Origin: Macrostomum lignano
Lineage: Eukaryota
NCBI GenBank assembly: GCA_002269645.1
Contig: NIVC01001051.1
Location: 309,132-373,131, forward strand
Direction: 5' to 3'
Length of the DNA: 64,000 nt
Below are positions 23,729 through 64,000 of the stretch, piece after piece. Numbering within the stretch: the stretch's first letter is position 1; every line of letters starts with the position of its first letter. The notes beneath the pieces are model-generated. The model saw only the letters and a program-made list of their open reading frames with translations. It did not search any database and had not been told where the DNA came from. The position numbers and the translations under genes are program-made.

Positions 23729-25732
23729 ATCTGTAGTTTTTAATTGACCGAAATCTCATATTGGAATCGAATCTGAGCTGTATTGTGAAGTTTTATTGCT
23801 CTATAAATCATACTCGTTTTCTTATATTGAATGGGCAGTACTGTAATGGTTTTATTAATAAGAATTGAACCTTATAGTTTTTAAGCATTTCTGTTTTGGT
23901 GGTTGTGCATGTGATATTGAAAACTTATTCGATATGCACATGTACAAATCACAAATATTTTAGAATGACATAAAAAACTTTCTGTCATAATTACAGCTCA
24001 CGCATTTTAGCTTTAGAAATAATTTCGTAGGCTGGTATTTTCTACTTTTGAATTATTGTACTGAAAGTAGCGCGGAAGGAAAAGTCGATATTATCATTTT
24101 TCCTTCGTTCCTTCGTCGTCTGTCTTAATTCATTCATTTTGGCTAGCTGTTATATTCTGCGCAAACGACGCATTTGTGATGAATCAATAATAATATGTCT
24201 TGCGAGTGTTTTACTATATTAATCGATCAATACCTACGCGGCATCAAATATATAGATATAAGGAAATGCACTTCAGACGGTTTTGTAAGGCACCAATTTA
24301 TACCGCGCTTGGGAAATTGCGATCGTCCTGTGTTTTCTGTCGCACAGAGTCATATTTGTGTAAGAATTTTATTAGTGATTTGATCGATACAATTTATATC
24401 AAAATCAAAATCATAAAGATGAAAGATTTCGGTCAAGAAACAGATTCAATAATTTTTTCTACAGGAGCAGGAGTATATTGCCATTGGTGTCAGGGACTTA
24501 CGGGAAGCTGCTTTACATTTTGCCTAGAGACAGTGATTAAGTGCTGAAGTGTATGTCGCATCTCAAATACTGGCTACCAAATTAATTATTCTCACAATTA
24601 AAGCCTAAATGATTAATAAACCCTATGTTATAAATACCCAATTTGTTCGCGTCTATCTGGATATCGACGCGTTAACTCTATTTCGGTGCATCCAGTTCAC
24701 GAGTCGTAAATCGTTTAATTCTGTTATAATTTTCGTACTCAGACGATTTCAAAGAGAATATTTTCAACGAAACAGATCACGGTCTTGTCAAACATCTCAA
24801 ACAAAAAACTGCTAACTTTTCCAGTTTAACTGAACTTTTCAGGCATGATTAACGAGTTCATTTTTTAATTATTGGCAGAATTCCTAGATACACAGCATTC
24901 CTAGTAAACTTTTAGTAACTTTTAGAAAGCTTTTAGTAACTAATTAAAAGCAAAATTTTTGCAACAATGTATATAACATCTTCAAATTCTCTTTTTAAAT
25001 ACAAAACCCTTTGAAACCCTTTGAGAAATTGAAAGAAGCGCCTTGGAACAGTCAGAAAAATATTTTCCATAACTAATAAAAACTTTCAATTCATCATTTT
25101 GTGTTCAAACTTAATGCTTTCCAATTTGGCTTTCAGCTTTGCTTTGAAATTTTTAGGCCTATAGCCAACTACTAGCCTCTGTAAAAATTCTCCTTATTGT
25201 ATGCAATTACAGGCTATAGGTTTGATATTGAATAAATAATTGAAGCTAAGAATTTATAATAGATAATTTAATTACTGAAATGTTGAGATATCTATTTTTG
25301 TTTGTTCTTAGATATATCTTCTATAAATTTAGATGATAATTCTATATTGTTCAAGTCTCTAATGTTCATTAATACTAAAATCTTAAATGAGAAATGAATG
25401 AAATGATAGGCTCCTATTTAATTAAAATAAGTCAAAATACTAATTTGTAATTAAATTTAATTTAATGCTTTGACTAAGCTTTGCCTTACCTAAAGTGTCT
25501 CTAATATTAAGTTTTAAATATAAAAATATAATAATGTTTCCAAAATAAAAGTTTATCTCAAAGTTATGTTGTACAAACAATGAGAATTTCTGCACCAAAT
25601 AGCATACTTTTCTGATGAGCAATGTATTATAGTATAAAAGATGAACTGGTACCTGCCTAATAACAAAGATTCAATAATAGGTAAACTAACTCTGCCATTG
25701 CTCTTCTACATCTGAAATTGGCTCAACTGCAG

Positions 25733-27289
25733 GCTCCATCTCTGCGCCTCTCCGCCAACCTCAGCTGGTTGTTCGCCGACCGGCCTGGCATTGTTGAGCG
25801 GCTGGGCCGCGCGGCGGCTCGCGGCTTTCGCTACGTGGAGGCGATGGACGCCGGCAGCGAGACCCCGGCCAGCCTAGCGGATGCCTGCCGGCACGCTGGA
25901 GGACTTCAGTTCGCCCTTATCAATGCGCCGCCCTGCCGGCCGCCCAGCGGCGATCTTGGCTTAACGGCCCTTCCAGATAGGTGAAATGGAGTGGCAATTC
26001 TTAGCCTACCCCAACCCATCCCCCAATGTACACACGCTCTCAGTCTGCCCCTAAGAATCCCACCCATCCCCCAATGTGCACACGCTCTCATTCTGCCCCT
26101 AAGAATCCCACCCATCCCCCAATGTGCACACGCTCTCATTCTGCCCCTAAGAATCCCACCCATCCCCCAATGTACACACGCTCTCAGTCTGCCCCTAAGA
26201 ATCCCACTCATCCTCCAATGTGCACACGCTCTCAGTCTGCCCCTAATAACTCCACTCATCCCCCAATGTGCACACGCTCTCAGTCTGCCCCTAATAACTC
26301 CACCCATCCCCCAATGTACATACGCTCTCAGTCTGCCCCTAAGAATCCCACCCATCCCCCAATGTACACACGCTCTCAGTCTGCCCCTAATAACTCCACT
26401 CATCCCCCAATGTGCACACGCTCTCAGTCTGCCCCTAATAACTCCACCCATCCCCCAATGTACATACGCTCTCAGTCTGCCCCTAAGAATCCCACCCATC
26501 CCCCAATGTACACACGCTCTCAGTCTGCCCCTAATAACTCCACCCATCCCCCAATGTACATACGCTCTCAGTCTGCCCCTAATAACTCCACCCATCCCCC
26601 AATGTACATACGCTCTCAGTCTGCCCCTAAGAATCCCACCCATCCCCCAATGCACACACGGCTACCAGCCTGCCACTACCAACCATAATATCTTAAATCA
26701 AAAGTTCGAAATGTACTATTGTAACAAAAATTCGAACTTTCCTTCCGGCAGACGCGAAGAATTCCGCGCTGGCCTGTCCGCCGCGGCCGACCTGTGCTCG
26801 GCTCTGTCCTGTCCGACACTTCACGTCATGTCCGGCCGCACGACCGTCCGGAGTCCGGAGGTCCGCGCCGCGTACGTAGACGGTCTGCGTGAAGCTGTCC
26901 AAATTTTTGCGCCTCTCGGCGTCACCTGCGTTATCGAGCCAATTAGCAACATAGCCGATTATTACCTGAACTCGTACACCGATGCGGTGGCCATCATTAA
27001 CGACGTGCCGGGCCTTCGCCTACTGCTGGACCTGTTCCACCTGCAGATGCTAGAGGGCTCGCTTGACTCGCTGCCAGCCTACCTGCCTCTGGCCGGTCAC
27101 GTGCAAATCGCGCAGGCACCTGGTCGCCAAGAACCCGGAGCACCGGGCGATATCGACTATGGCGCGGTGTTGCGTCAGATTGGTGAGGCCGGCTACTCGG
27201 GCTGCGTCGGACTGGAGTACCGACCGAGCGACGGTGCCGAGGCCGGCATCGACTGGCTGATTGAGATGGGCTACCTGCACCCTCATTGA
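25733..27289 (+). CDS. HYI: Hydroxypyruvate isomerase-like (xylose-isomerase TIM-barrel family); genomic CDS lacks its initiator ATG
   Basis: Exons 25733-25980 and 26752-27289 (phase 2). Reads APSLRLSANLSWLF...GFRYVE...LINAP...LHVMSG...VIEPI...LLLDLFHLQ...GHVQIAQAPGRQEPG...CVGLEYRP, matching the HYI pattern (human starts MAPLRFSANLSWLF). Confidence 0.92.
26005..26660. repeat. 48-bp minisatellite in the HYI intron
   Basis: About 13 copies of CCCATCCCCCAATGTACACACGCTCTCAGTCTGCCCCTAAGAATCCCA and variants. Confidence 0.95.
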
Positions 27290-44438: not shown

Positions 44439-45860
44439 TTCCGCCGCATATTTGCACAACTGGATCTGGTGTGTATTGGAGCTGCAGCAGTTCAGTGCTG
44501 CTTCATGGAATCATAAACTGCCTGCCCTTTATGTGGATGTGTCTTGAAAAATTATTTCATAGCTTTACATGTAGTGCGTTAAGAAATGTTTGTTTTAACG
44601 AAAACGTGCATGCGTTTAAAATTTAAGATTTTCAGCCCAAGACTTGGGCAAGGATTTAGTCGTAGAAGATCAAAAGAGTCAGGTTCTATGATCTCTAGGT
44701 ACAGGGGATGTGCGTAGAATAAAAAATTAACATAGAATCCTAACTTTCTAAACGAATAGCTTCATGACTATCATGTAATGGAGCTACTATGAGAAAAGCA
44801 CAGCATCCCAAAGACATCTGGTCTGCCTCCTATCGAAAGCAATGATATTTTTGTGCTGAAAAATACAAACTTCATATTTACTTAGTGTATTTTTTTCGAA
44901 GAAAACCATTTGGAAATTTCTAAAGTTTCCAAGCTTCCCGTCCTTCTTCTTGAGTAGTCCAAGTGAACTGTGCCGATCCGTTTGTCAAGCTGAATTCAAA
45001 AGTGTGCATTTTATAGAATTAAAATAAAATTAACGTATTGTTTTTTAAAAAAAGTAAAAAATTATAGAACTATAAATGTGACCTAATTATTTACAAAAGG
45101 TCTGAGCAATCTAAGAATTAATACAAATGATTGTGCAAAACAAAAAATGTCATTAAATCCACAACTGGGCGGGAGTTTAAGTTGACTGCGGCGACATAGT
45201 TTTTTTTCAAGGTTAACCTTACTTTAGAGAGTATTTATTTTATTTTTATGTGATTTTACACTTTTTAAAACATAAGAATATTTTCAGTATAGAATAAATA
45301 AAAATATTTGAGTCTCTTTTGGTAATTGCCGCGATGAATGTCATAGAGTCATGAGTCATTACATTCCTTTCAAATCGACTAGAGTCACGAGACTACTGGC
45401 TAGGCGAGGCAAAGACAATTAAGTTGGTCGGATCGGATATAAATTTTTTAATTCAATTTTTAAGTCCAACAACTGCATCATCTCATAGCTCTTAATTTTA
45501 TATATTAAGTGTATACTTTATTTTTATTGCATTTTATATTTATGTATTATAATAATATTAATATTACTAGTTCTTCTAACTTCTAATATTTTAAATATCT
45601 AAGTGATAGATAGTCACTACTAACAAATCAGCCAGTGTTTTATATTAAAGGCTTCTAATTAAAATCAAATTTGACAGGGCCTTCATCACTTTTATATTTT
45701 TAAAAATAGAGAATAGATGTATATTTTTATTGTAAAGCTGATCGAAGGGAATATATCATATATTTTAAATTTTTAGGTTTTTGACTAAACTAAAAAATTT
45801 AACATACTAATTAACCCTACATATATTCTATATTTCAGTGTGCTTAATAAACTGTTTCAC

Positions 45861-48800
45861 ATGGTACAAAGTAAGTATATTTGAAGAAATGCATATTGTT
45901 GTAAAATGTGGAAGAAACCCATCTTAATGCTGCAATATCAGTGCTCTTACCCTCAATCACTTCAGTTACAGAAGATCTAGTTCGGCGAAGAGCTGAACAC
46001 AATGAGTGCCAGATCAGCACTTTGGAAGAGCTGTCTCTGCATCAGCAAGATATTGAAAAGTGAGCTCAAATATTTGCTTGTTAATTTATCAATTAGATTT
46101 TCAAATTTTTAACCTAATTATATTTTCTATTGACAGAATCGAACACTTGGACAAGTGGTGCAGAGATCTGAAAATTCTATACTTGCAGAGCAACCTGATT
46201 GGCAAAATTGGTGAGTTTGAAGATCCTAATTAAAATCTGATTTTTATTTTACATTCAGAGGTGCCACTATTTTCTTCAAGTGGGGTGCAATTAAAAAGAG
46301 GGAGTTCTGGCGCCACCTCCCTCAAACCAGTTCTGGCGCCACCTCCCTCAAACCAGTTCTGGCGCCACCTCCCTCAAACCAGTTCTGGCGCCACCTCCCT
46401 CAAACCAGTTCTGGCGCCACCTCCCTCAAACCAGTTCTGGCGCCACCTCCCTCAAACCAGTTCTGGCGCCACCTCCCTCAAACCAGTTCTGGCGCCACCT
46501 CCCTCAAACCAGTTCTGGCGCCACCTCCCTCAAACCAGTTCTGGCGCCACCTCCCTCAAACCAATTCTGGCGCGTTCTTGGGCCAGCTTATTTACATGTT
46601 GACACCCCAAACCCGCCGTATCCGCACGCAGAGAATGTTGGCCGGCTAAAGAAACTCGAATACTTGAACTTGGCGCTAAACAACATTGAGCGAGTGGAGA
46701 ATCTCGAAGGCTGCGAGTCTCTGGCGAAGCTCGACCTGACGGTGAACTTCATCGGAGATATTCTGTCCTTGGCCAGCCTGACAGGCCTGGTGAACCTTAG
46801 GGAGCTCTACCTCACTGGGAATCCTTGCGCCCAGTTCGAATCCTACAGAGATTTTGTTATCTGCACGTTGCCGCAGCTCAAGGTTTGACCATCTGATCTC
46901 TTCTGAGAATTTGATGCTCCCTTCGAAATTAAGAAGTCTTCTCTTTCCTCTTTCAGTACCTTGATGGAGAAGAGATCAGCCGGTCCGAGCGAATCAAAGC
47001 TGAACAGGTGACTCTTTATTGAAGTACGAATTTGATTGGAACCTAAGTAGTACAATTCTAAATGACGTTAAAAAATCTAGTTCATTGCTAAAGTACAAGT
47101 ATAATTCTAATGCTAAGGTTTTAGTGGACGCTTTGTAAGTCAAATAGACGCAAAAAGCAAATTTAAGGTCGACATTAAAGTGCAAATCTTAGTGCAGTAG
47201 CCGCTAAATGTACAACTATAACTGGCACTAAAGTACAAAAAATGTAGACAATAAAGTAAAAATCAAGGTACACACTAGGGTACAAATCAAGGCAGAAACT
47301 AAAGTACAAGTCGAGGCAGACACTAAAGAACAAGTCAAGGCAGACACAAAAGTACAAGTCAAGGCAGACACTAGAGTAAAATCAAGGCAGATACTAAAGT
47401 AAAATCAAGGCAGACACTAAAGTACAAGTCAAGGCAGACACTAAAGTACAAGTCAAGGCAGACACTAAAGTACAAGTCAAGGCAGACACTAGAGTAAAAT
47501 CAAGGCAGATACTAAAGTAAAATCAAGGCAGACACTAGAGTAAAATCAAGGCAGATACTAAAGTAAAATCAAGGCAGACACTAAAGAACAAGTCAAGGCA
47601 GACACAAAAGTACAAGTCAAGGCAGACACTAGAGTAAAATCAAGGCAGATACTAAAGTAAAATCAAGGCAGACACTAAAGTACAAGTCAAGGCAGACACT
47701 AAAGTACAAGTCAAGGCAGACACTAGAGTAAAATCAAGGCAGATACTAAAGTAAAATCAAGGCAGACACTAAAGTACAAGTCAAGGCAGACACTAAAGTA
47801 CAAGTCAAGGCAGACACTAGAGTAAAATCAAGGCAGATACTAAAGTAAAATCAAGGCAGACACTAAAGTACAAATCAAGGTAGACGTTAAAGTACAATTC
47901 AAGACGACTCTAAAAGTACACCCGTTTTTTATTTTTTATCAGTTTCTTACAATAATTCCTATCTTTCTTATCAACTAAAACTCAGCCACCCATCATCACG
48001 CGCACAGAACTACCCGTTTATTTACGAGCGCACGCGTCAAGCGCAGGCGGACTGGGCCAGACAGCGGGAGGTCGAACGCCAGGAAGCGGCCGAGAGGCAG
48101 CGGGAACGGGAAAAACTGAAGGCTGCGGGTGCCGGACTGGATGAACAGTGAGGCACTGGCAGATTGGGGATGATGGCAGTGAGGCACTGGCAGATTGGGG
48201 ATGATGGTAGTGAGGCACTGGCAGATTGGGGATGATGGCAGTGAGGCACTGGCAGATTGGGGATGATGGCAGTGAGGCACTGGCAGATTGGGGATGATGG
48301 CAGTGAGGCACTGGCAGATTGGGGATGATGGCAGTGAGGCACTGGCAGATTGGGGATGATGGCAGTGAGGCACTGGCAGATTGGGGTTGATGGCAGTGAG
48401 GCACTGGCAGATTGGGGATGATGGCAGTGAGGCACTGGCAGATTGGGGATGATGGCAGTGAGGCACTGGCAGATTGGGGATGATGGCAGTGAGGCACTGG
48501 CAGATTGGAGATGATGGCAGTGAGGCACTGGCAGATTGGAGATGATGGCAGTGAGGCACTGGCAGATTGGGGATGATGGCAGTGAGGCACTGGCAGATTG
48601 GGGATGATGGCAGTGAGGCACTGGCAGATTGGGGATGATGGTAGTGAGGCACTGGCAGATTGGGGATGATGGCAGTGAGGCACTGGCAGATTGGGGGTGA
48701 TGGCAGTGAGGCACTGGCAGATTGGGGATGATGGCAGTGAGGCACTGGCAGTTCGCAGTCTGATTCACCCGCAGGTTCATGCAGGAGAAGGTGCCCTACA

Positions 48801-50480
48801 CGCCCGAATCGCGCATTGAGACGCACGAATTTATGCAGGAGAAGCGGCGGCGCGAGAATCCCGAGCCGTGAGTTGAGCTGGCATGAACTGCTCTGCCTGC
48901 CTGCCTGCTTATCTGTCTGTCTGCCTGTCAGGATAAATTTAACCAGCCTCCCCCATCGATGCCCCCGCAGCGAAAAACCGGCCCCGAAGCAGCACCCGCT
49001 GTTTTTCCCGGACGGCCGACCCTACAATATAAACGAGGCAAAGTGAGTCGTGCCAAAAATTGATTGCTCGGCTTATTTTAAAATCATTGTCACAAGCCAA
49101 CCAGCTCCTACTGGACTGCAGACTCGACTTCACACTCACTGACGATGAAGAGAACAATGCCTATATTCTGGACGTCGCGGTGTTCAAGTGAGTGAGGATG
49201 AGAGGCTGGTGTTTTAGGGTGGAGTGAGTTGCGGACTGCTGGGGAACTACCGGAGATCCGGAAAGTACATGCAAGGGAATTTATTGTGAAATTAGAACTT
49301 TTTGAAATTAATAGATTCGGACAGTCGGGGAATTACTAGATTCGGACAGTCGGGGAATTACTCGATTCGGACAGTCGGGGAATTACTCGATTCGGACAGT
49401 CGGGGAATTACTCGATTCGGACAGTCGGGGAATTACTAGATTCGGACAGTCAGGGAATTACTCGATTCGGACAGTCAGGAAATTACTAGATTCGGGCAGT
49501 CGGTGAATTACTCGATTCGGACAGTCGGGGAATTACTCGATTCGGACAGTCGGGGAATTACTCGATTCGGACAGTCAGGGAATTACTCGATTCGGACAGT
49601 CAGGGAATTACTCGATTCGGACAGTCGGGGAATTACTCGATTCGGACAGTCGGGGAATTGCTAGATTCGGACAGTCGGGGAATTGCTAGATTCGGACAGT
49701 CGGGGGAATTACTCGATTCGGACAGTCGGGGAATACTAGATTCGGACAGTCGGGGAATTGCTAGATTCGGACAGTCGGGGGAATTACTCGATTCGGACAG
49801 TCGGGGAATTACTCGATTCGAACAGTCGGGGAATACTAGATCCGGACATTCGGGGAATTACTCGATTCGGACAGTCGGGGAATACTAGATTCGGACAGTC
49901 GGGGAATTACTAGATTCGGACAGTCGGGGAATTACTAGATTCGGACAGTCGGGGAATTACTAGATTCGGACAGTCGGGGAATTACTAGAATGTTCAGAGA
50001 ATTCCCCCTGCCCGCCGCAGGCACATGGACACCAGCCTGATCGACTGCGATGTGCAGCCCCAGTACATCCGCGTCACCGTCAAAGGCCGCCTGCTTCAAC
50101 TGGCCTTGCCTGGCGAGGTCCGCACCGACGAATCCTCGGCCGTACGCTCAGCCACCACCGGCCACCTGCTGGTCACCATGCCGAAGGCGCATGGAGAGCC
50201 GCTGCGAAAATCGGCGGCATCGGCAGCTGTAGCCAAACCGGCAGCCGCCGTTCCGCCGACAACGAAAACGGAGTCGCAGCCGCGCCACGCCTACTTGGAA
50301 GTCGACGAATCCAGCAGGCGAGGCGTCGTCGACCTCCGTGTGGTGCCGCCAGAAGCCGACAAGGTCAGCGGCGGCAAAAACGGCGGCGGCTTTGCTGGCC
50401 GGTCAACAACGAAGGCCGCCGTTGAGCGGCCGAATTCGCCGGGTTTTGTCGACGATCCCGACGTGCCGCCGCTGATCTGA
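45861..50480 (+). CDS. DNAAF11: Dynein axonemal assembly factor 11 / LRRC6 (LRR + CS domain), 10 exons, 436 aa
   Basis: Exons 45861-45870, 45966-46059, 46137-46210, 46632-46882, 46957-47007, 48008-48147, 48775-48867, 48971-49042, 49122-49187 and 50021-50480 (total 1311 nt). Reads [15 protein letters not shown]...LEELSLHQQ...[15 protein letters not shown]...LALNNI...LDLTVNFI...PESRIE...[12 protein letters not shown]...TTGHL and ends DVPPLI. Confidence 0.96.
46300..46572. repeat. 26-bp minisatellite in LRRC6 intron 3
   Basis: About 10 copies of TTCTGGCGCCACCTCCCTCAAACCAG. Confidence 0.95.
47225..47900. repeat. ~24-bp minisatellite with two interspersed variants, LRRC6 intron 5
   Basis: AAGTACAAGTCAAGGCAGACACTA alternating with GAGTAAAATCAAGGCAGATACTA. 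Confidence 0.93.
48148..48750. repeat. 31-bp minisatellite starting exactly at the LRRC6 intron 6 donor
   Basis: GTGAGGCACTGGCAGATTGGGGATGATGGCA; GTGAGG recurs from 48148 to 48737 = 20 copies. Confidence 0.96.
49315..49990. repeat. ~25-bp minisatellite in LRRC6 intron 9
   Basis: GATTCGGACAGTCGGGGAATTACTC, about 27 copies. Confidence 0.95.
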
Positions 50481-50589
50481 CCTACTCGTTATACATGCAT
50501 ACCTGTAGCTAACACATTTTGCCGATATGATCGAAAGTTTTGCTTGTTAAAGCAAAACTTTACTTTAACATTCTGAGTGTTTTATTAAT

Positions 50590-50595
50590 AATAAA
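50590..50595 (+). terminator. Probable LRRC6 polyadenylation signal AATAAA
   Basis: 110 nt after the stop codon, followed by T/GT-rich sequence. Confidence 0.6.
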
Positions 50596-50929
50596 CTTGT
50601 ATTTTACCGCATTATTTGGCGCATTTTGTCACTGTGCTTAACTTTATTTCATACCAATTGCATGTACGAGCGTATATACATGTACTTACTTGATAATACA
50701 CACCTAGCCGTAATTTAGTTGATTTGTTGCTCACAAAATACAGAAACAATAATTCCTTTCGGCGTCAATTGCTTTTAAAATAATTTAACTGCCTGCTTTT
50801 GGCTCTTCCACAATGTTTCCTATGAACTAATTGACCACTTTTTGGATAATTTATCCACAGATTAGGTTGACACTTTTAGTAGATAGGATACATCATATAC
50901 ATTCAGCAACATTCTGGTCTGGTCTGGTC

Positions 50930-51490
50930 TGGTCTGGCTGCAGGGGCGCAGAGTGAAGGGGGCTGGAAGGCGTAGGGATGAGAGATAAGGCTGCCAATTA
51001 TATGGGGTGTGAATACGGCCAGTCTGTCTGCAGGGGCAGAGAGTGAGGTGGGGCCTCGAAGGGGTAGAGTGGAGAGATAAGGCTGCCAATTATATGGGGT
51101 GTGAATACGGCCAGTCTGTCTGCAGGGGCAGAGAGTGAGGTGGGGCCTCGAAGGGGTAGAGTGGAGAGATAAGGCTGCCAATTATATGGGGTGTGAATAC
51201 GGCCAGTCTGTCTGCAGGGGCAGAGAGTGAGGTGGGGCCTCGAAGGGGTAGAGTGGAGAGATAAGGCTGCCAATTATATGGGGTGTGAATACGGCCAGTC
51301 TGTCTGCAGGGGCAGAGAGTGAGGTGGGGCCTCGAAGGGGTAGGGAGGAGAGATAAGGCTGCCAAATTATATGAGTGTAAATAGGGTCATTCTGGCTGAA
51401 GGGGCAGAGAGTGAGGTGGGGGCCTAGAAGGCGTAGAGTGGAGAGATAAGGCTGATATAGTGTGAAAACGGCCAGTCTGGCTGCAGGGGC
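50930..51490. repeat. 92-bp tandem repeat between converging gene ends
   Basis: TATGGGGTGTGAATACGGCC recurs at 92-bp spacing (51001, 51093, ...); about 5 copies. Confidence 0.92.
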
Positions 51491-52233
51491 ACCGAGTGAG
51501 GTGGGGCCCGGGGAATTAAGGGGTAAAGAAATTGAAATTGAATTAATAAGGCTGATAGCTATATGGGGCCTGGGATATGTACACGGTCAGTTAGGCGGGA
51601 ACTTAGGATTAGGAAGGATAAATAAAGCTTTGTAAGAGTTCAGACATGAAAGTATTTACCACCTGAAAAAACGCGAAATAAATAAAATTAAACAAAAGCA
51701 CCCGGCATCCATGCACTACCGATTTGCAGTACATTTTTTACATGAATACAATTACATCTTAAAATCAAGTGGCAGCAGAAATGCGTTCAGAAAGAGGCTT
51801 TATTCTCGGCATACGTTGAGCAATATGAGAATAACAAACTTCAACTAACAAATAAGAGATAGTACTAAAAGTTCAGAAAACATGAAAATCACTAACTAAA
51901 CCAATTCACTAGCATTCAAAGGTTAAAATGTTACGCCTATGGTAGGGAACTTGTAGTAGAAGTTTAGGCCCATAACAGGGGATTGTTGATCAAGACTGAG
52001 GACCATGAAAGGGGACTATTGGTCTAGCCTGAGGACTATAAAGTGGACTCAAGGACTACTCAAGTAGGGCGGGAAACTTCGTTTCTTAGAAAATTTTAGG
52101 AAGCAGGTTTTACCGATAAAAACCACAACGGAGATAGGGAGTTTTAATTTTTTTCAGCATAAAAATTGTTATTGCTTTCGATATGAGGCAGACCCAATGT
52201 TTATCTTTTGATCTGTTGTGCTTTTCTTATAGC

Positions 52234-52239
52234 TTTATT
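52234..52239 (-). terminator. Probable polyadenylation signal of the hydrolase-like gene
   Basis: AATAAA on the minus strand about 75 nt after the stop. Confidence 0.5.
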
Positions 52240-52312
52240 GATATTCAACTGTGGACCCAGCAGGTACATTTTCACACGCCAGTATCAGACAAAGAGTTAA
52301 CAAAATCGCAAA

Positions 52313-54167
52313 CTAAACAGCGGCAGTCCGTCGCCTGGCAGCCGACTCGGAGGCGAGGCTGCCGGCCCTGTCCAGCAGGTTGCCCGTGTTGGCGGCCGAA
52401 GTTACCGCCGCAGATCTGGCGCAATAGCCGGCCATCCTGACCAGATAGTCGGCAAACAGCCTATAATCGGCATTATCGTTGCCATAGCAACCGGCCGGAT
52501 AAGGCCAGCCGGACACGGAGAGCCGCTTAGCCGGCAGCAGTTGACGAGCCGAGCCGCTCCATTCGATTGGCTCCTCGGACAGCAGGAGCTGCAGCCGTCG
52601 ACTGTCCTTGGCCAAGGCGGTCAGGTGCATCGGCGAGCAGCGCATCGCCACGGCCAGCGAGCGGCCGTTGTCGGAGTCGCGGTGGCGCAGGCCCAGCAGG
52701 TGGTAGGCTCGGAGCCGCAGCCACTGCCGGCCAATCAGTGGCGGCCAGTTGACGAGCGGGCTGCAGGCGGCGATGGCGGCGGCCGGCAGGACGCGCAGCA
52801 CAGAGTGAGACCACAGGCCGGCGGTTAAGTCGGCCAGTAGCCGCAGCGCCGACCATTTCTGCAGCGGGTCCGGGTCGCTGGGAGCCGTCAGCACCGCGCC
52901 AGATAGCAGCTCCGGTGCCAGGGTTGCCATAGCAACGGCTGGCCAGCAGGCCTGACCGGAGGCCACAACTAGCACGGGCCGGTTGGGCATGGATCTGAGA
53001 GCGCGGTTTCTGAGCAGCCGGCACAGCAGGATGGAGTTCTCAGCTGCCGAGTAGGAGAATACCTGCGAGGATTAGTGAGGTGCTCAGTTGATGCTCGATT
53101 CATACTACTGACTGTTTCATTTCCTCGATTTTTATACTACTGACTACTCATTCGATCCATACTACTGACTATTCCCTCGATTTTTATACTACTGACTACT
53201 TATTCGATCCATACTACTGACTATTCCTTCAATTTTAATACTACTGACTACTCATTCGATCCATACTACTGACTATTCCCTCGATTTTTATACTACTGAC
53301 TACTCATTCTATCCATACTACTGACTATTCCCTCGATTTTTATACTACTGACTACTCATTCGATCCATACTACTGACTATTCCCTCGATTTTTATACTAC
53401 TGACTACTCATTCGATCCATACTACTGACTATTCCCTCGATTTTTATACTACTGACTACTTATTCGATCCATACTACTGACTATTCCCTCGATTTTTATA
53501 CTACTGACTACTCATTCGATCCATACTACTGACTATTCCCTCGATTTTTATACTACTGACTACTTATTTGATCCATACTACTGACTATTCCCTCGATTTT
53601 TATACTACTGACTACTCATTCGATTCATACTACTGACTATTATCTCGATTTATACTGACTGGCTACTGAATAGACTCAGTACTGAATATTATACTTAACC
53701 GATTGACAATGACTACTTAATTGACTCATACTACTAATCACCAGCAGACTCACCCGCTCATCCTTAGCCGAGTGACCGGGCGAGCCCAGACCCGGCCAGA
53801 GCGGCAGCAGCACCCGTTGGCCGGCCTCCTCCAGATAGCGGCCGAGAGTCTCAACCTCCGAGTAGCCGCGCCCAAACGGCGCCAACAGGAGGAACAGCGC
53901 GTGCTGAGACTGGTGCTTCTTAGCCGGCACCGGGCTGAGATAGTAGCGCAATTTGAACTGCACCCCGGTGTAAATAGCCCTGTGCAGCCAAGCGTCCGAG
54001 GTTACCAGGGTCTCGCTCAGCGGGCCCAGGTGCTGCAGGTATTCGCTGGCAGTTTTCACTGTTGCAGGGCCGCCAGTTCCATTGGAATTGTTGGTCTCGG
54101 GTCCGGCAGTGCTGGCGAGCTGACGGCGCCAGCAACAGCGGCGCCACGAGAGGAGCCGACGCGGTAA
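52313..54167 (-). CDS. Alpha/beta-hydrolase-fold-like protein, probably catalytically inactive; genomic CDS lacks an ATG
   Basis: Exons 54167-53754 and 53062-52313 (phase 0). The pattern ALFLLLAPFG...LGRYLEEAGQRVLLPLWPGLGSPG...PVLVVASGQACWPAVAMATLAPELLSGAVLTAP parallels ABH strands beta3-beta6. The fold assignment is by eye. Confidence 0.7.
52478..52491. promoter_or_regulatory. Exonic RFX X-box GTTGCCATAGCAAC (copy 1)
   Basis: Exact match to the X-box consensus; lies in codons CYGN. Confidence 0.4.
52923..52936. promoter_or_regulatory. Exonic RFX X-box GTTGCCATAGCAAC (copy 2)
   Basis: Identical 14-mer; lies in codons VAMAT (a different frame). Confidence 0.4.
53100..53660. repeat. 52-bp dimeric (25+27) minisatellite in the hydrolase-like gene intron
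   Basis: Alternating TACTACTGACTACTCATTCGATCCA and TACTACTGACTATTCCCTCGATTTTTA. Confidence 0.93.
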
Positions 54168-54299
54168 CTGAATGATTGGGTTTTTCAGCGATTGGAGTAC
54201 GTAATATGAACACTTATAGCAGGTATTCTTTAGTTATAGCATAACAGGTAATACATGGACCTAAAAATACTCATGGAACTAAGGACGCATATTGCCTAA

Positions 54300-55340
54300 C
54301 GACAGCCTGATGGACCTAAAAACGGGCTGATGGACCTAACAACGGGCTGATGGACCTAACAACAGGCTGATGGACCTAACAACGGGCTGATGGACCTAAC
54401 TACAGGCTGATGGACCTAACAACGGGCTGATGGACCAAACGACAGGCTGATGGACCTAACAACGGGCTGATGGACCTAACAACGGGCTGATGGACCTAAC
54501 AACGGGCTGATGGACCTAAAAACGGGCTGATGGACCTAACAACGGGCTGATGGACCTAACAACGGGCTGATGGACCTAAAAACGGGCTGATGGACCTAAC
54601 AATGGGCTGATGGACCTAACGACAGGCTGATGGACCAAGCGACAGGCTGATGGACCAAGCGACAGGCTGATGGACCAAGCGACAGGCTGATGGACCAAGC
54701 GACAGGCTGATGGACCAAGCGACAGGCTGATGGACCAAGCGACAGGCTGATGGACCAAGCGACAGGCTGATGGACCAAGCGACAGGCTGATGGACCTAAC
54801 GACAGGCTGATGGACCCAACGACAGGCTGATGGACCTAACGACAGGCTGATGGACCCAACGACAGGCTGATGGACCTAACGACAGGCTGATGGACCAAAC
54901 GACAGGCTGATGGACCAAGCGACAGGCTGATGGACCAAGCGACAGGCTGATGGACCAAACGACAGGCTGATGGACCTAACGACAGGCTGATGGACCTAAC
55001 TACAGGCTGATGGACCCAACGACAGGCTGATGGACCAAGCGACAGGCTGATGGACCAAGCGACAGGCTGATGGACCAAGCGACAGGCTGATGGACCAAGC
55101 GACAGGCTGATGGACCTAACGACAGGCTGATGGACCCAACGACAGGCTGATGGACCTAACGACAGGCTGATGGACCAAACGACAGGCTGATGGACCAAGC
55201 GACAGGCTGATGGACCTAACTACAGGCTGATGGACCAAACGACAGGCTGATGGACCTAACGACAGGCTGATGGACCTAACGACAGGCTGATGGACCCAAC
55301 GACAGGCTGATGGACCCAACGACAGGCTGATGGAACTAAA
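54300..55340. repeat. 20-bp minisatellite (GACAGGCTGATGGACCTAAC), ~52 copies
   Basis: Variants occur in blocks along the array; it lies upstream of the ATG-less acceptor. Confidence 0.96.
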
Positions 55341-55905
55341 GAGGAGGCGATGGAAATTATGAAGGGCCGATGGACCTAAACACTAACTTGCTGAAATACC
55401 TTTAAAACTAAGCTAAATAAAAAGGAATAAAAACACGAATATTCCCTTGTCAATGGCGGTGTGTATTTTACAATCATTATGCTATCTTTACCAGCCACAA
55501 CACATCCAAACACACGATTTTATAGTTGAGGTACACAAACAGAAAAAAATATTACAGAATAAATGAACAAAATAATTAGAACAATCTACAGTTTCTCTTC
55601 ACATTGTTTCAGAAGCTTACTACGAGTAAAATCGGGGAAAATCCAGGCGATTATCTGGTTATAAAACTGACTGAGCCGATGCTGAATAACTGAACTTTAC
55701 AGAGCGCGCATGTAGAAACGCACTCCAAGAAATCAGCGGTGAATCTGCTTGTTCGATTGATGCATTATTGATTAAAATAGAAGCGCTCGAGCCGGTTAAT
55801 ACTTTTTAGTATTAATAAAGTTATAAAGTATTAATATGTTTGTACTGGAGTTCGACTGCCGGCTACGGGCCACGGCAGCTTGTGGGGATGGACTAAACTG
55901 AAATT

Positions 55906-56060
<155 letters not shown>

Positions 56061-56680
56061 TGGCACGCCGAGCAAGCCGGATGCCAAAACAAAGTCTCCA
56101 ATTAACAAAACCGGTAAAAATGAAGGCAATAAAAAGCAGATACACAGGCAAAACAGCATATTTGGCCGAACTAAACCACAAAGCGTGGTACAGACTCAGG
56201 CAAAGTGATTTGATGCACAGAAAAAAAAAACAAATTAAGTTTGGCAAGGGCCTGTATGAAAGAGACTGAAGAAATTAAAGCTACATACATACATATTCGT
56301 AAGCCTCACTGTACACGTCTGGGAGTGAACGAACAAGATTAACATCAAAGTATGGGCTGCTGAACTTTAGTTTAATTAATAACAGCCTAGTCATAATTAG
56401 TTACCATAATAATAGAACTGAAGCCTGTACAGTACATGCATTATGACAGTTGAAATTGTTTGATTAATAGGCAGTATGACTCTGGTGAGATCGGGGTTCC
56501 CTTGTTGACCCAGAGAGTAGGCCATGTCAATGAAATAGGTATGGCTCATACGGTTCTCTGAATCTCGTACTAAGTCGAGTCACACAGATAATAAAGACCG
56601 CCAAAGGACAATAGCAGAGCTACCGCGAAGGTCAAGGCAGGTCACGTCAGGAATCGTCCAACACAGACTACTCTGGGGGG

Positions 56681-57052
56681 GGTCACGCCAGGTCAGGGCA
56701 GCACAGGCTTTACTCTCGGGGTCACGCCAGGTCAGGGCAGCACAGGCTCTACTCTCGGGGTCACGCCAGGTCAGGGCAGCACAGGCTCTACTCTCGGGGT
56801 CACGCCAGGTCAGGGCAGCACAGGCTCTACTCTGGGGGTCACGCCAGGTCAGGGCAGCACAGGCTCTACTCTGGGGGTCACGCCAGGTCAGGGCAGCACA
56901 GGCTCTACTCTCGGGGTCACGCCAGGTCAGGGCAGCACAGGCTCTACTCTCGGGGTTACGCCAGGTCAGGGCAGCACAGACTCTACTCTCGGGGTCACGC
57001 CAGGTCAGGGCAGCACAGGCTCTACTCTCGGGGTCACGCCAGGTCAGGGCAG
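56681..57052. repeat. 39-bp minisatellite, 10 copies, whose first unit contains the PLEKHM2 stop codon
   Basis: GGTCACGCCAGGTCAGGGC recurs from 56681 to 57032 at 39-bp spacing. Confidence 0.95.
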
Positions 57053-60000
57053 AGTCTGTTCGCACAGCAGCGTCAGCGCCCTGGCTGAGGCGCGAAGTCC
57101 GCCGGCCCGACCTGGCGGCAGGCGGCGCAGCGGCAGCCGGGGCAGCAGGTGGCGCAGCAGGCGGCCCAGCCGGTTCCGCTCCTCGGCGGAGCCCAGGCAG
57201 ATCAGCCAGGTGGTGGGAGGGCGCAGCCGCAGGGTCAGATAAGTGGGGTAGTGCGGATCGTAGCCAATACTGCGGATCTCGTCTAAAGTGACTAGATCGA
57301 CCGTTTCTACCTGGAAGTTTAGAATGAGAAACAGCTCAACTACAGCTATAGAATGCTCAGATTGCAGCTCAACTGCAGCTATAGAATGCTCAGATTGCAG
57401 CCCAACTACAGCTATAGAATGCTCAGATTGCAGCTCAACTACTACAGCTATAGAATGCTCAGATTGCAGCTCAACTACAGCTATAGAATGCTCAGATTGC
57501 AGCTCAACTACTACAGCTATAGAATGCTCAGATTGCAGCTCAACTACAGCTATAGAATCCTCAGATTGCAGCTCAACTACTACAGCTATAGAATGCTCAG
57601 ATTGCAGCTCAACTACAGCTATAGAATGCTCAGATTGCAGCTCAACTACAGCTATAGAATGCTCAGATTGCAGCTCAACTACAGCTATAGAAAGCCACTA
57701 TAATACGTACAGCTCAAATGCTACTTCACAGGAGCCCCAGATCCCGCCCAAGAGCTGCACTCACCGTCCAGACCCCGGGCAGCTCGGCGCCCAGAGCGAG
57801 GCCATGCTCAGTAACCAACAGCGTCAGAATCTTTGAAGTGGCGCCGCTGCCGCTGCCGCCAGCGCCGCCGCGCACCAGAGCGGTGCAAATTGCCTGTTTC
57901 CAAGTGACAGAGCTCTGGCCGCCGATCATGACGGTGTCACCGCCGGCCAGCGTCACCTCCACTACGGTGCCATTGTCGGCGTCCTGAACCAGGCAGCATC
58001 CCCGACAGCCGGCCAGCGACCACTGCGGCCCGCCGTCGCCCGGAGCGGCCAGCAGCCAGCCGCCGGAGAGTAGCAGTCGTCGGCGACTCCAATCGCCGCG
58101 CGGCGGCCGCACAGGCAGCCGGGCGTCGAGCAGCACCTCGTGCGTAGTTAGCGCGTAGTGCATCGGCGCGCCAGACAAATTGGACGCCTCGGCGCGCAGC
58201 CATTTGCCCAGGCCGACGTCTTGGCAGGGCGAGCCGCGGAACAGCGGCACAGTTGGCAGGCAGCGGCGCAAGTCGCGGGTCGCCGATTCGCCGATCGACT
58301 GGTCGACGCAGGCGACAAAATGGCGGGCGGAGCGGACCACGCCGACCAGGTGAAGCAGGTGGCCCTGGCCGCTCTGGCACACGTGATCGAGCGAATCCGG
58401 CCGCCATTCGCACAGCCTGCGTTAATGCGGATGGAATTCTACTACTTTTAGTAGAGTATGCGAGTTATCCGTGATCTACTGCTGTAATATTTAGAGTAAT
58501 ACTGACACGCCAACCCTCCGGAATCCTCCGCTGCCAGGCCCTCAACCCTCCGGAATCCCCCGCTGCCAGACCCTCAACCCTCCGGAATCCCCGCTGCCAG
58601 GCCCTCAACCCTCCGGAATCCCCCGCTGCCAGGCCCTCAACCCTCCGGATTCCTCCGCTGCCAGGTCCTCAACCCTCCGGAATCCCCCGCTGCCACCACC
58701 TCCTTGAAATCCTACAGTCCCAAATGTACTACAAGTTGATTACACGGTAAAAACTGTTAACAATCAACAATGAAAACAAAGGTGACAGAAGCAGACTCCG
58801 CACCTGGACAGAGAACCGGAAGACACCAGTCTAACCCGGCCAGGCGACAGGCACAGCAGGCAGGCCGCCCAGGCGTCGCCTCGCCACCACAGAGCTCTAT
58901 AAGCTGCGCTGAGTGTCGCATCGCCCAACGTGTCCTGAACCTGACGCAACGGCAACGCGTAGTCGCTAGAGAGAGCCGCCGGTTCAAAAGGATTTGGCGC
59001 ATCTGATGTCACTGAATCGTCCGACAAAGATTCATCAGCGTCAGTGTCAGCATCCGTTTTAGCTTTGGCACTGGCTGCATCCGCATCCGCATCCGCATCC
59101 GCATCCGCATCCGCATCTGCATCCGTATAGGCATTCGCTTCATCTGAATATGTGTACACATCAGCATCCGCATCTGCATCCGCATCAGCATCCGCATCCG
59201 CATCAGCATCCTCATCCTCATCAGCTCGCAAAGCCGCTTCGGCCTCTTGTAGTTCGTCGGCCAGCGACCTGGCCAAACTGGCGGGCTGCTGCTGGCCGGA
59301 CCGCGAGAGTTGGTTGCCCGACGCCGCCGCCGCCGACATGGACAACGGCATCGACATTGGCAGCGGAAGAGACGGTCGAGGATGTCGCTGCTGTTGTTGC
59401 CGATTTCTGGACGATCGAACATCGCCATTCAGTTTGACAGGCTCAGCAGCAGCAGGGGGCGCAGGTTGGCTGTCAGGTTGGCTGTCAGGTAAGCTGTCAG
59501 GTTCATCGCTATCGAGCCGCTGCAGCTGGTTGTGATTGTCGGCTAGCAGGCCAGCGGCAACGGGAAAACAGTCGGCATCGTCGTCGGAGTCCGCCAGCGC
59601 CAGCCGATAATAGTTGGATGACGAGCCACCGTTGGCTGCCTGCTGCTGTTTCTGGCGATGCGTCAGCTTGCGCTCAACAACCAGACTGTCTTCCTGCGAC
59701 ATCGCGATGCTGTTGAAATCGGACGACAGGTCCTGCTGCTGCGGCGGCTCGTCCGGCTGCTCGTCAGTCGGAGGCATTGTTGACGAAGATCGAGACGATG
59801 ACGGCGGCTGTTGATCCTGAGAGGAGCCAGTTGACGACGCCTGCGGATGGCTGTTGGCCTCGGCTGGGTCAGGCAGAGCGGAGAGTGAGCCAGACGAGCC
59901 GGACTCGGTGTCGCCGCGGTGCCGATCGCGCCGGGCCGGGTCCTGACAGCCGACGTCCAAGAAGGTGACGGTGGCCCAGGACACGCAGGACAGGTCGCAG

Positions 60001-60991
60001 TGCTCCAGGCCGGCCAGCAGGGTCTGCAATAGGCGGGTTCTGTTGGCATTGGCCAGCAGGGCGTGCGGCTCGTAGAATTTGCGTAGCAGGGGGACATCGC
60101 CGGCAAGGCTGGCCAGATAGGACTCGAGTAGAGACTCGCTGAGAGCCCGGAACAGCCAGGCGCGAGCTCTGCCGTGATTGGTTAGGAGGTACCTGGGCAA
60201 AGATAAGGGATTGAACGGGTACACTGCTGAGGCATGAGCCTGACTGTGCATACGTGCAAACTGAGGAATATAAGCGTAGAATGGATATTATAAGCTGTGA
60301 GGTGTGTACATTGTGTGTGTACATTGAGGGTAGAGAGGTGTGGGCGAGGGCGGAAAATTGTGTGTACATTGAGGGGTAGAGAAGTGTGGGCGAGGGCGGA
60401 AGATTGTGTGTACATTGAGGGGTAGAGAGGTGTGGGCGAGGGAGGAAAATTGTGTGTACATTGAGGGGTAGAGAGGTGTGGGCCAGGGCGGAAAATTGTG
60501 TGTACATTGAGGGGTAGAGAGGTGTGGGCCAGGGCGGAAAATTGTGTGTACATTGAGGGGTAGAGAGGTGTGGGCCAGGGCGGAAAATTGTGTGTACATT
60601 GAGGGGTAGAGAGGTGTGGGTGAGGGCGGAAAATTGTGTGTACATTGAGGGGTAGAGAGGTGTGGGTGAGGGCGGAAAATTGTGTGTACATTGAGTGGTA
60701 GAGAGGTGTGGCCTCAATGCAGGAGAATATTGGAAGGCAAAGGGCTTTAAGCTAGAGTTACCTGCTGGCTTTAATCTCCCGAATAACATCTTTATGGCTG
60801 AGCTCCACAAGCAGGTCCCAGTAGCCGCGCGACGGTGTCCTTAGGCCGTCAAGAAATACTCGATCTAGACAGTGACAGACTTTTTGCACGCAGGGATTGT
60901 CGCTGGTTAGAGCGATGCTCTCGGTGCAGATGCACTGGATCTCTTTGAGGGCGACGCTAAGCCGCTGCAAATGAGCGTCCTTGATGGACAT
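57044..60991 (-). CDS. PLEKHM2: PLEKHM2/SKIP-like RUN-domain protein, 4 exons, 845 aa
   Basis: Exons 60991-60762, 60192-58804, 58416-57765 and 57310-57044 (total 2538 nt). The RUN domain MSIKDAHLQRLSVALKEIQ...LDRVFLDGL...GYWDLL...HGRARAWLFRALSESLLESYL...RKFY...LLAGLE matches SKIP. It continues into an acidic low-complexity middle, a divergent PH-like region and a C-terminal WLICLGSAEERNRL similar to SKIP WVIYLSCTSELDRL. Confidence 0.85.
57330..57690. repeat. 33/36-bp minisatellite in PLEKHM2 intron 3
   Basis: CAGCTCAACTACAGCTATAGAATGCTCAGATTG, about 10 copies. Confidence 0.93.
58511..58700. repeat. 32-bp minisatellite in PLEKHM2 intron 2
   Basis: About 6 copies of CAACCCTCCGGAATCCCCCGCTGCCAGGCCCT. 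Confidence 0.9.
60300..60710. repeat. 46-bp minisatellite in PLEKHM2 intron 1
   Basis: About 9 copies of ATTGTGTGTACATTGAGGGGTAGAGAGGTGTGGGCCAGGGCGGAAA. Confidence 0.93.
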
Positions 60992-61172
60992 TTTCGCGTT
61001 GAGCGCGAAAAAGTGAAACAATTGTTGCTTAACCAAATTTTGCTGGCATCATGCAGTTTTATGAAAAAAACTTAAGAGTGAAAATTATGTAATACAATTT
61101 TTAATATACTGTGGTTTTGCCTACCAAATCTACCAATGTGCACGACTTAGCTCGTATAACTAACATTTTAAA

Positions 61173-61680
61173 CAGTTCAGGCCATAGACATAGCAACTAC
61201 ATCCAGACCATGAGGCACTGGCTGACCTGCTCAACAACAACAGTTCAGGCCATAGACATAGCAACTACATCCAGACCATGAGGCACTGGCTGACCTGCTC
61301 AACAACAACAGTTCAGGCCATAGACATAGCAACTGCATCCAGACCATGAGGCACTAGCTGACCTGCTCAACAACAACAGTTCAGGCCATAGACATAGCAA
61401 CTGCATCCAGACCATGAGGCACTAGCTGACCTGCTCAACAACAACAGTTCAGGCCATAGACATAGCAACTACATCCAGAACATGAGGCACTAGCTGACCT
61501 GCTCAACAACAACAGTTCAGGCCATAGACATAGCAACTGCATCCAGAACATGAGGCACTGGCTGACCTGCTCAACAACAACAGTTCAGGCCATAGACATA
61601 GCAACTACATCCAGAACATGAGGCACTGGCTGACCTGCTCAACAACAACAGCTCAGGCCATTGACATAGCAACTGCATCC
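61173..61680. repeat. 68-bp tandem repeat upstream of PLEKHM2, ~7.5 copies
   Basis: CAGTTCAGGCCATAGACATAGCAAC recurs at 61173, 61241, 61309 and onward. Confidence 0.94.
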
Positions 61681-62344
61681 GTCATTGTGAATTTAAGTAA
61701 AGAAAATACATAATACAAACTAAAACAGCTTGAAAGCCAAAAATAACTTTTATATTTATCAAAATGAAAGTGTGAAACGAAAAAAGCAATTCAGTCATCA
61801 AGTTCTAAAATAGTCTGAATTTTTTAAAAACTAAACTAGGACATGGTTATTTGATATACGAATCAATCAAGAGAATGAATACTAATCAAATGGATTAGTA
61901 ATGCAGAATGTTACATGGAATTCGCAGACCCGCACTACTAGATAAGAGCTAAGAACGAGTTAATGCAAGTATAGAAACCAATACAATGCTGTGCATACGC
62001 ATACGCTAGCAACTAAGCCAGCTGGTATCGAATCAAACGGTTAGATGAGCAGTAAAACCATCTACCTAACATTTTTTCTAAGAAATGCCGAGAAGTGTAA
62101 CTATATGACGGCGCAGTACTTGAGTACATTGACTTAATAACGGCTAGTGTTTTCATAATCTACGAGTGGTATATAGATAATAAACATGTTAATCATCATC
62201 TACTCGTAGCTAGATTTAGACTAGAAGTCAAGCAAATGTTCATTATAAAACAATCAAGCACTTCTTTGTTAAAGGCAGGTGAAAGCGCATTGAAAGCCGA
62301 TTTTAAGACTACTTCCGGTAGGTTGCATGTAATACACTAACCGA

Positions 62345-62775
62345 ACAGCTGATGAAGCAGCTGATCAAACAGCTGACCAAACAGCTGATCAAACAGCTGA
62401 TCAAACAGCTGATCAAACAGCTGACCAACACCTAATCAAACAGCTGACCAACAGCTAATCAAACAGCTGACCAACAGCTGATCAAACAGCTGACCAACAG
62501 CTGATCAAACAGCTGACCAACAGCTGATCAAACAGCTGACCAACAGCTGATCAAACAGCTGACCAACAGCTGATCAAACAGCTGACCAACAGCTGATCAA
62601 ACAGCTGACCAACAGCTGATCAAACAGCTGACTAACAGCTGATCAAACAGCTGACCAACAGCTGATCAAACAGCTGACCAACAGCTGATCAAACAGCTGA
62701 CCAACAGCTGATCAAACAGCTGACCAACAGCTGATCAAACAGCTGACCAACAGCTGATCAAACAGCTGACCAATA
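62345..62775. repeat. 23-bp (12+11) minisatellite made of CAGCTG modules
   Basis: CAGCTGATCAAA + CAGCTGACCAA, about 18 dimers. Confidence 0.95.
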
Positions 62776-63100
62776 CAGTTGATATTTTTAAGGATAAAAT
62801 GTCTTTTAAAATCGGCCCTCAAAAATATTGACAAAGTAGTTTGAAATGTGCATCACTGTTAAAAAAAGAAATTAAAAAATAATTTCCCCAAACAAAAGTC
62901 AGAACAGGATTCCAGCAGTTGAACAGCACTGCAGCTGGGCAGCCGCATCTCTGCCATAGCTGATGGGCTCCACCACTGACAGACCGGGTCTGAGATCGTC
63001 CGCGAGTAGGCCGGGGCAGTCGCCGATCTCAGCTGGAACAGCGGCGCCGAGGTCTCAGGTTCGAGCTCCATCTCGCCGCCGATCTCATTACAGTTGGCCG

Positions 63101-63202
63101 CTATTGCTGAGTCTTCAAACGAACCCTTTCGCTGGCTCGTGTGCCGAAACAGGCGATGCTCTGCAGCAGGGCGGAAACCTCCGACTCAAAGTTTACGCTG
63201 GC
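63101..63202 (-). CDS. Possible terminal exon of an upstream minus-strand gene
   Basis: A pyrimidine-rich acceptor CTCTCTCCTCACCCGCCCTTCCAG precedes ASVNFESEVSALLQSIACFGTRASERVRLKTQQ*. GC-rich, coding-like sequence continues to ~62890 in another frame, so the true frame is uncertain. Confidence 0.3.
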   Translation of the reverse strand, partial: ASVNFESEVSALLQSIACFGTRASERVRLKTQQ

Positions 63203-63304
63203 CTGGAAGGGCGGGTGAGGAGAGAGTGAATAGTTTGAATTCGCGCCAACGTGCTGAATCCGAATTCTAATAATCATTTCTAAGATTAACAAGATTCATC
63301 TCAT

Positions 63305-64000
63305 GGATTACCAATAATCCAACAGGATTACCAATAATCCAACAGAATTACCAATAATCCAACAGGATTACCAATATCCAACAGATTACCAATAATCCAA
63401 CAGGATTACCAATGATCCAACAGATTACCAATAATCCAACAGGATTACCAATGATCCAACAGAATTACCAATAATCCAACAGAATTACCAATGATCCAAC
63501 AGGATTACCAATAATCCAACAGGATTATACAATATCCAACAGGATTACCAATAATCAACAGAATTACCAATGATCCAACAGGATTACCAATGATTCAACA
63601 GGATTACCAATGATCCAACAGGATTACCAATGATCCAACAGGATTACCAATGAATCCAACAGGATTACAATGATCCAACAGGATTACCAATGATCCAACA
63701 GGATTACCAATGATCCAACAGGATTACCAATGATCCAACAGGATTACCAATGATCCAACAGGATTACCAATGATCCAACAGATTACCAATAATCCAACAG
63801 GATTACCAATAATCAACAGGATTACCAATAATCCAACAGGATTACCAATAATCCAACAGGATTACCAATGATCCAACAGGATTACCAAATGATCCAACAG
63901 GATTACCAATGATCCAACAGATCACCAATATCCAACAGGATTACAATATCCAACAGACCACATAATCCAACAGGATTACCAATAATCCAACAGGATTACC
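63305..64000. repeat. 20-bp minisatellite (GGATTACCAATAATCCAACA) running off the window
   Basis: Units contain GGATTA-CCAA-TAATCC. Many single-base indels suggest lower consensus accuracy here. Confidence 0.93.

Follow-up and report, generated by a model that had tools for sequence, protein, structure and literature searches.

The window analyzed here comprises 64,000 nucleotides at the end of scaffold NIVC01001051.1 in the Macrostomum lignano assembly GCA_002269645.1 (Mlig_3_7). Its minus strand carries a two-exon gene, Mlig005851, whose predicted product resembles alpha/beta hydrolases. The gene lies between a PLEKHM2-like gene upstream and DNAAF11/LRRC6 downstream, and no genomic AUG is able to start its full-length protein. 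We propose that the missing start codon would be donated by the spliced leader (SL), and that the N-terminus so completed may be a mitochondrial presequence. The features of the locus are collected in Table 1, where a caret, as in the text, marks a splice junction or a cleavage site.

Table 1. Features of the Mlig005851 locus and its upstream region (window positions)
Feature	Position	Strand	Basis
In-frame TAA upstream of exon 1	54234..54236	-	minus-strand reading
Putative SL trans-splice acceptor ATCATTCAG^	54168..54176	-	sequence and published motif (PMC8629364)
Codons of residues 2-22 (LPRRLLSWRRCCWRRQLASTA), Arg-rich, acid-free, RQL^AS R-3-like motif	54105..54167	-	composition
Exon 1, 414 nt, GC 0.70 from first base	53754..54167	-	translation, GC profile
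Intron with 52-bp satellite	53063..53753	-	sequence, tandem-repeat finder
Exon 2, degenerate nucleophile elbow A-S-G-Q-A, stop	52313..53062	-	translation, PDB alignment
First in-frame ATG, codon 163	52988..52990	-	translation
AATAAA poly(A) signal	52234..52239	-	sequence
Putative outron/intergenic region, PLEKHM2-like stop to acceptor	54168..57043	-	sequence, tandem-repeat finder
Formal cis alternative ATG...ACA^GTGAGG (MLILFVHSQTCT)	56310..56345	-	sequence

Structure and identity of the Mlig005851 gene

Read on the minus strand, the upstream TAA is in frame with the downstream open reading frame (ORF) and closes it ahead of exon 1. The 22 codons that follow it up to the acceptor (LKNTCYKCSYYVLQSLKNPIIQ) contain no ATG, and the acceptor is joined in phase 0 to TTA CCG CGT CGG, with 54167 as the first exon base. 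Exon 1 consists of 138 codons, is in phase 0 at both ends, contains no Met codon and closes with the donor GAGCGG^GTGAGT at 53753. The intron of 691 nt (GTGAGT...CGCAG) is occupied by its satellite between 53119 and 53667. Exon 2 opens after CCTCGCAG^ and includes the stop codon, 74 nt 3' of which lies an AATAAA. The earliest in-frame genomic ATG, at codon 163 of the genomic ORF (residue 164 when the SL Met is counted), sits shortly before the nucleophile elbow, inside the alpha/beta-hydrolase-like fold. The ATG-less state is structural, since the frame is bounded by a stop. The first-pass annotation of this DNA had described the in-frame stop, the lack of a subsequent ATG and the phase-0 acceptor with coordinates that proved exact to the base, and it had correctly placed the first genomic ATG midway in the fold.

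The spliced translation of 387 aa matches three M. lignano GenBank proteins at 99-100% (BOX15_Mlig005851g1, g2 and g3; PAA72940.1, PAA55104.1 and PAA53740.1), all labelled “partial”, and the protein of the window is identical to PAA72940.1 from residue 3 on. The two other genomic copies lie on NIVC01002811.1 and NIVC01003031.1. The three genomic copies are 97-99% identical throughout, and the intact 387-codon frame is kept in all three. The coding sequences (CDSs) of g2 and g3 are identical; compared with them, the window copy has 10 codon differences, 5 synonymous and 5 nonsynonymous, the latter including C12F in the presequence-like segment. This pattern fits the known large-chromosome duplication in the DV1 line plus one homeologue. 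The gene is maintained, as judged by its three intact copies, the 5 synonymous and 5 nonsynonymous homeologue differences and its own AATAAA. The name “Mlig005851” was not found in searchable papers or supplements.

UniRef A0A1I8FPM5 (“Exostosin domain-containing protein”) and A0A1I8FHQ1 (“Pecanex-like protein”) are apparently frameshifted translations of this locus from the older ML2 assembly, and their names are therefore misleading. In UniProt A0A1I8IIN3 and A0A1I8GQB1, translation continues through the acceptor (NPI[IL]Q-LPRR...).

The product is probably a lineage-restricted alpha/beta-hydrolase-like pseudo-enzyme. Pfam Abhydrolase_1 is matched at E=0.047 with 13.8 bits, under the cut-off of 25.8; the PDB matches are weak (3qit, E=0.026; 9jux, E=1.6); and UniRef labels fragments of the protein “Hydrolase_4 domain-containing”. 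In the weak PDB alignments, residues 84-131 correspond to the first strands and oxyanion region of alpha/beta hydrolases and residues 115-237 to the nucleophile-elbow region, which implies that exon 1 must be translated. The segment VVASGQA is aligned on the G-H-S-M-G elbow of 3qit, so that Gly takes the place of the catalytic Ser, and a G-x-S-x-G elbow with a catalytic Ser is absent from the hydrolase-like protein (about 52950-52965, minus strand). A HMMER search against 1.84 billion representatives matched four proteins in total. The sole foreign relative, Logan contig L004 (SRR31628394), is 51% identical, carries the 3' (last) exon only and retains ASGQAC (200-217) in an intact frame; the pseudo-enzyme is thus probably a conserved one. 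Since L004 is limited to this exon, the acceptor and the presequence-like segment are not comparable across species. A word-indexed homologue search with the N-terminus returned M. lignano entries only. AlphaFold models from the single sequence and from a four-row alignment both had a pLDDT near 34 and were unusable.

The spliced leader as candidate source of the start codon

M. lignano has a single SL of 35 nt, CGGTCTCTTACTGCGAAGACTCAATTTATTGCATG, which ends in ...TTGCATG (PMC8629364; PMC10468722), and 30-39% of its genes are trans-spliced (PMC8629364; PMC5730564). Wiberg 2023 described the ATG that ends the Macrostomum SL as a start codon for translation (PMC10468722), and a 3'-terminal ATG has been reported for all flatworm SLs. 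In Schistosoma, the SL ATG was shown to be the initiator Met of mRNAs that possess none themselves (Cheng et al. 2006 J Biol Chem 281:733, as cited in PMC9851317, PMC12582326 and PMC7653826); according to the account in PMC9851317, 28% of trans-spliced transcripts were in frame in that study, and more than 40 cDNAs needed the SL AUG. Initiation at an SL-supplied Met is thus an established mechanism in flatworms, and it has been recognized in Macrostomum.

For Mlig005851, we propose that the pre-mRNA, whether driven by an upstream promoter of its own or produced by read-through from, or in an operon with, the preceding PLEKHM2-like gene, would be trans-spliced at CAG^54167 to the 35-nt leader. 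The 3'-terminal AUG of the leader would then stand directly in frame with TTA CCG CGT..., would be the first AUG met by a scanning ribosome, and would open a 388-codon ORF starting MLPRRLLSWRRCCWRRQLAST... In the modelled mRNA, in which the junction reads ...GC ATG TTA CCG..., this ORF has no intervening stop. Two further AUGs follow, both out of frame (8 and 33 codons) and both ahead of Met164, a start at which would give half a fold.

Several observations point to such a start. The deposited CDSs of the three Mlig005851 copies begin 0, 3 and 6 nt past the AG of the acceptor, and the annotation pipeline (TBONE) trims the 5' ends of genes at peaks of SL reads (PMC5730564); the model of the neighbouring DNAAF11 likewise begins 1 nt past a TTTCAG acceptor. 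The published trans-splice motif of M. lignano is [T/C]TNCAG (PMC8629364), and the acceptor of the two other copies, CTTCAG, matches it perfectly. The GC content is 0.37 before and 0.70 after the acceptor, with the step exactly at 54167, and neighbouring genes that own an ATG have AT-rich 5' untranslated regions (UTRs) with a GC of 0.31-0.39. The GC step suggests that coding sequence starts at the first exon base. Taken jointly, trans-splicing at 54167 and initiation at the SL AUG are likely. An SL RNA gene, a member of any Rfam family or a tRNA was not found in the region.

A second gene in the window provides a comparison. On the plus strand, a hydroxypyruvate-isomerase/2-oxo-tetronate-isomerase-like (HYI-like) gene (25682-25980) has an in-frame TAA (25682-25684), after which there is no ATG, and a phase-0 acceptor, CTGCAG^GCT CCA TCT, at 25733, where the GC content steps from 0.38 to 0.65. 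All these traits are shared with Mlig005851. With an SL Met, the HYI-like product would start MAPSLRLSANLSWLF. In the PDB and NCBIfam searches, residue 6 of this product falls on residue 3 of E. coli YgbM (1k77) and on positions 2-3 of the profiles NF043033 and TIGR03234; the homologue search with exon 1 of this gene gave no match. As the N-terminus of the HYI family has room for few residues and the genome offers no ATG, initiation at the SL would be practically required. For the SL-Met N-terminus of the HYI-like product (MAPSLRLSANLS), a conserved family is available for comparison, whereas the hydrolase N-terminus is without informative homologues. The HYI-like gene is the clearest candidate for SL-AUG initiation in the window and serves as a convincing positive control, indicating that the SL mechanism would operate in the M. 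lignano genome and in this window.

The proposal of an SL-supplied Met was already made in the first-pass annotation. It is strengthened by the terminal ATG of the SL, the phase-0 frame, the annotated starts 0-6 nt past the AG, the GC step, the chance-level occurrence of the competing cis exon described below and the HYI-like control; the trans-splice step itself is inferred. A further argument, that two phase-0 genes in 64 kb are unlikely by chance, is weak because the genes were selected for being in phase.

The following points weigh against initiation at the SL AUG. The acceptor of the window copy, ATTCAG, has one mismatch to the published motif. The Kozak context of the SL AUG is weak, as positions -3 and +4 are both U. 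The staggered annotated starts could also come from a fuzzy transcription start. The exact SL-Met proteins of two alleles were not found in the protein collection. The three copies are too alike for exon and outron to be separated by conservation. The GenBank “partial” flag was considered as a sign of a missing ATG and rejected, as the PLEKHM2-like gene and DNAAF11 own an ATG and are flagged nonetheless.

The stagger and the weak context are in favour of an alternative in which the SL AUG would be unused: transcription would start near 54167 by itself, or translation would begin after trans-splicing at a near-cognate codon (in-frame GTG/CTG codons 37-62) or at Met163, yielding a shorter product or marking a decaying locus. 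The loss of the nucleophile Ser and the balance of 5 synonymous and 5 nonsynonymous differences between copies, which indicates mild constraint only, are in keeping with this explanation. However, the first AUGs would then be out of frame, and a product started at Met163 would lack the strands aligned with the N-terminal part of hydrolases. Intact frames in three of three copies and the retention of the frame and the ASGQAC motif in the 51%-identical relative also speak against it, and a stagger of 0, 3 and 6 nt would arise as well where reads carrying the SL cannot be mapped end to end (mapping method in PMC5730564). We regard non-use of the SL AUG as improbable.

Alternatively, the ATG might come from an upstream exon joined in cis. 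As the first-pass annotation described, an ATG at 56345 leads through an open frame to ACA^GTGAGG (56310/56309), and joining it to 54167 over a 2.1-kb satellite-filled intron would give MLILFVHSQTCT-LPRR... The ATG, the open frame, the phase-0 join and the consensus GTGAG donor are all present and intact in three copies, and acceptors in flatworms are often common to cis- and trans-splicing (PMC12582326). Such an arrangement is nevertheless no more than chance would give: the 2876-nt region contains only two GT[GA]AG donors, one of which (56309) lies behind the in-frame ATG 56345, and at least one ATG-plus-donor combination occurred in 55% of block shuffles of local composition (P=0.55). The GC content of the cis exon is 0.42, compared with 0.65-0.70 at real coding starts; it starts about 30 nt past an ATTAAA (56376-56371) that is the sole poly(A) signal of the upstream gene; and all three RNA-seq-guided gene models leave it out. 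A cis-spliced start is accordingly unlikely, and initiation at the SL AUG remains our preferred explanation.

The proposed arrangement resembles the Schistosoma SL system as cited from Cheng et al. 2006, in which the SL also ends in ...UUGCAUG, the acceptor is in phase with an AUG-less ORF and the SL gives Met1. Unlike that case, Mlig005851 is a lineage-restricted gene of a free-living basal flatworm, the Met supplied by the SL would stand at the front of a targeting peptide, and the start is here predicted from sequence. The phytochelatin synthase of S. mansoni was considered as an earlier case of a mitochondrial isoform that depends on the SL and was rejected, since it is reported as not trans-spliced.

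The Arg-rich N-terminus and possible mitochondrial targeting

Presequences of the R-3 class are cut by the mitochondrial processing peptidase MPP, and Icp55 then removes one residue. With the donated Met, the N-terminus of the Mlig005851 product reads MLPRRLLSWRRCCWRRQLASTA; it has six Arg in 22 residues and no Asp or Glu before E25, and R16-Q17-L18^A19-S20, as read in the translation, fits the R-3 pattern, a motif of low specificity. These properties had been pointed out before and are confirmed in the translated sequence. In our proposal, the Arg-rich, acid-free first ~18-20 residues would act as a mitochondrial matrix-targeting presequence and would be cleaved near RQL^AS. The segment shares with R-3 matrix presequences its N-terminal position, its Arg-rich and acid-free composition and the R-x-(F/Y/L)^(A/S) motif. 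It differs from them in being rich in Cys and Trp and in that amphipathicity is not demonstrable.

The latter difference is among the findings that weigh against a presequence. A stretch of 14 residues has a hydrophobic moment of 0.575, and the 18-residue helical value of 0.325 is not above that of shuffles (p=0.61). GC-rich codons favour Arg, and among GC-matched stop-free 22-aa windows from the six-frame translation 3.3% show the same composition. Two Cys and two Trp are atypical of presequences. A helix is predicted at the N-terminus, in AlphaFold models with the low pLDDT given above. Among the four proteins of the full HMMER search there is no homologue of known location; such an orthologue is absent because the family is lineage-restricted. 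All of these are consistent with an alternative that concerns the targeting half of the proposal only: the SL Met would be used, and the Arg-rich N-terminus would be a by-product of GC-rich codons, a basic patch of nuclear, nucleolar or RNA-binding function, or a disordered linker. We hold this alternative to be less likely than not.

Other properties of the segment speak against it. The Arg-rich, acid-free composition is limited to the extreme N-terminus, where all of the windows with this composition are located (3 of the 367 windows of the protein), and the first acidic residue is E25. The RQL^AS motif lies at a typical distance, and the extension of about 65 residues ahead of the fold is long enough to hold a cleavable signal. 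In addition, WRR[C/F]C may resemble the phi-x-x-phi-phi motif of TOM20. On the basis of the composition and the R-3-like motif, we consider the chances that the Mlig005851 product would be targeted to the mitochondrial matrix to be about even.

Implications and genomic surroundings

We tentatively suggest, with rather less confidence than in the start codon itself, that start-codon-less genes may constitute a regular class in Macrostomum for which trans-splicing would be an obligatory licence for translation, and that the SL here would also supply residue 1 of a presequence. If this is true, both the synthesis and the organelle import of a lineage-specific pseudo-hydrolase would depend on SL addition, and no protein would be made from unspliced or read-through operon RNA. 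The mechanism is not new in kind; the value of the case would lie chiefly in annotation and in being readily testable, as transgenesis in M. lignano makes the function of the SL in translation and targeting directly accessible to experiment. Many “5'-partial” CDSs of M. lignano probably need no more than the SL Met to be complete, the three Mlig005851 copies being examples; the HYI-like gene likewise lacks a genomic ATG. Trimming or ignoring the SL ATG would bias gene counts, N-terminal signal predictions and inventories of organelle proteomes in M. lignano. Mlig005851 would further add an example from a free-living, early-branching flatworm to a mechanism experimentally shown only in Schistosoma, and would lend support to the view that flatworm SLs have retained their conserved ...UUGCAUG end because it is needed by genes.

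The upstream same-strand neighbour is a RUN-domain PLEKHM2-like gene with its stop TGA at 57046-57044, and the ATTAAA at 56376-56371 is its probable poly(A) site. The spacer of 2876 nt between this stop and the acceptor contains tandem arrays at 54295-55379 (20 bp x54), 55906-56060 ((GTCT)n) and 56679-57052 (39 bp); after subtraction of the arrays, about 1270 nt remain from the stop, or about 940 nt if the ATTAAA site is taken as the upstream 3' end. According to the operon rule for M. lignano, a same-strand neighbour lies less than 1 kb away with repeats subtracted and the downstream gene is trans-spliced (Ustyantsev & Berezikov 2021, PMC8629364). Mlig005851 is like the downstream genes of operons in having a same-strand upstream gene, the PLEKHM2-like gene, and a repeat-filled spacer. 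It is unlike them in its distance, which is borderline to the 1-kb threshold and would fit either operon membership or a promoter of its own.

The annotation of the PLEKHM2-like gene begins as an open frame at 61045, a position not after an AG, and the gene has its own ATG at 60991 (60989-61045, minus strand). Its stop codon falls within the first unit of the 39-bp x 9.6 array (56679-57052, minus strand), so that its 3'UTR opens with the array.

The downstream neighbour, DNAAF11/LRRC6, lies on the opposite strand (45839-45967, plus strand), and its annotated start is 1 nt past TTTCAG^ (45838). Its first exon of 32 nt has its own ATG at 45861, ends in ATG GTA CAA A^GTAAGT and is spliced to CTTCAG^TT ACA GAA (45966). 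In this gene an SL AUG would not share the reading frame; it would begin a 3-codon upstream ORF (ATG TGT GCT TAA).

Tandem repeats pervade this part of the window. The output of the tandem-repeat finder (TRF) for the 18 kb from 46000 to 64000 has 30 rows, and there, on both strands, nearly every intron and intergenic spacer has its own array; the periods range from 4 to 118 bp, and the largest array has 54 copies. The copy number of the arrays varies between homeologous copies, as in the hydrolase-gene intron, which measures 691 nt in the window copy and 347 nt in the other copies.

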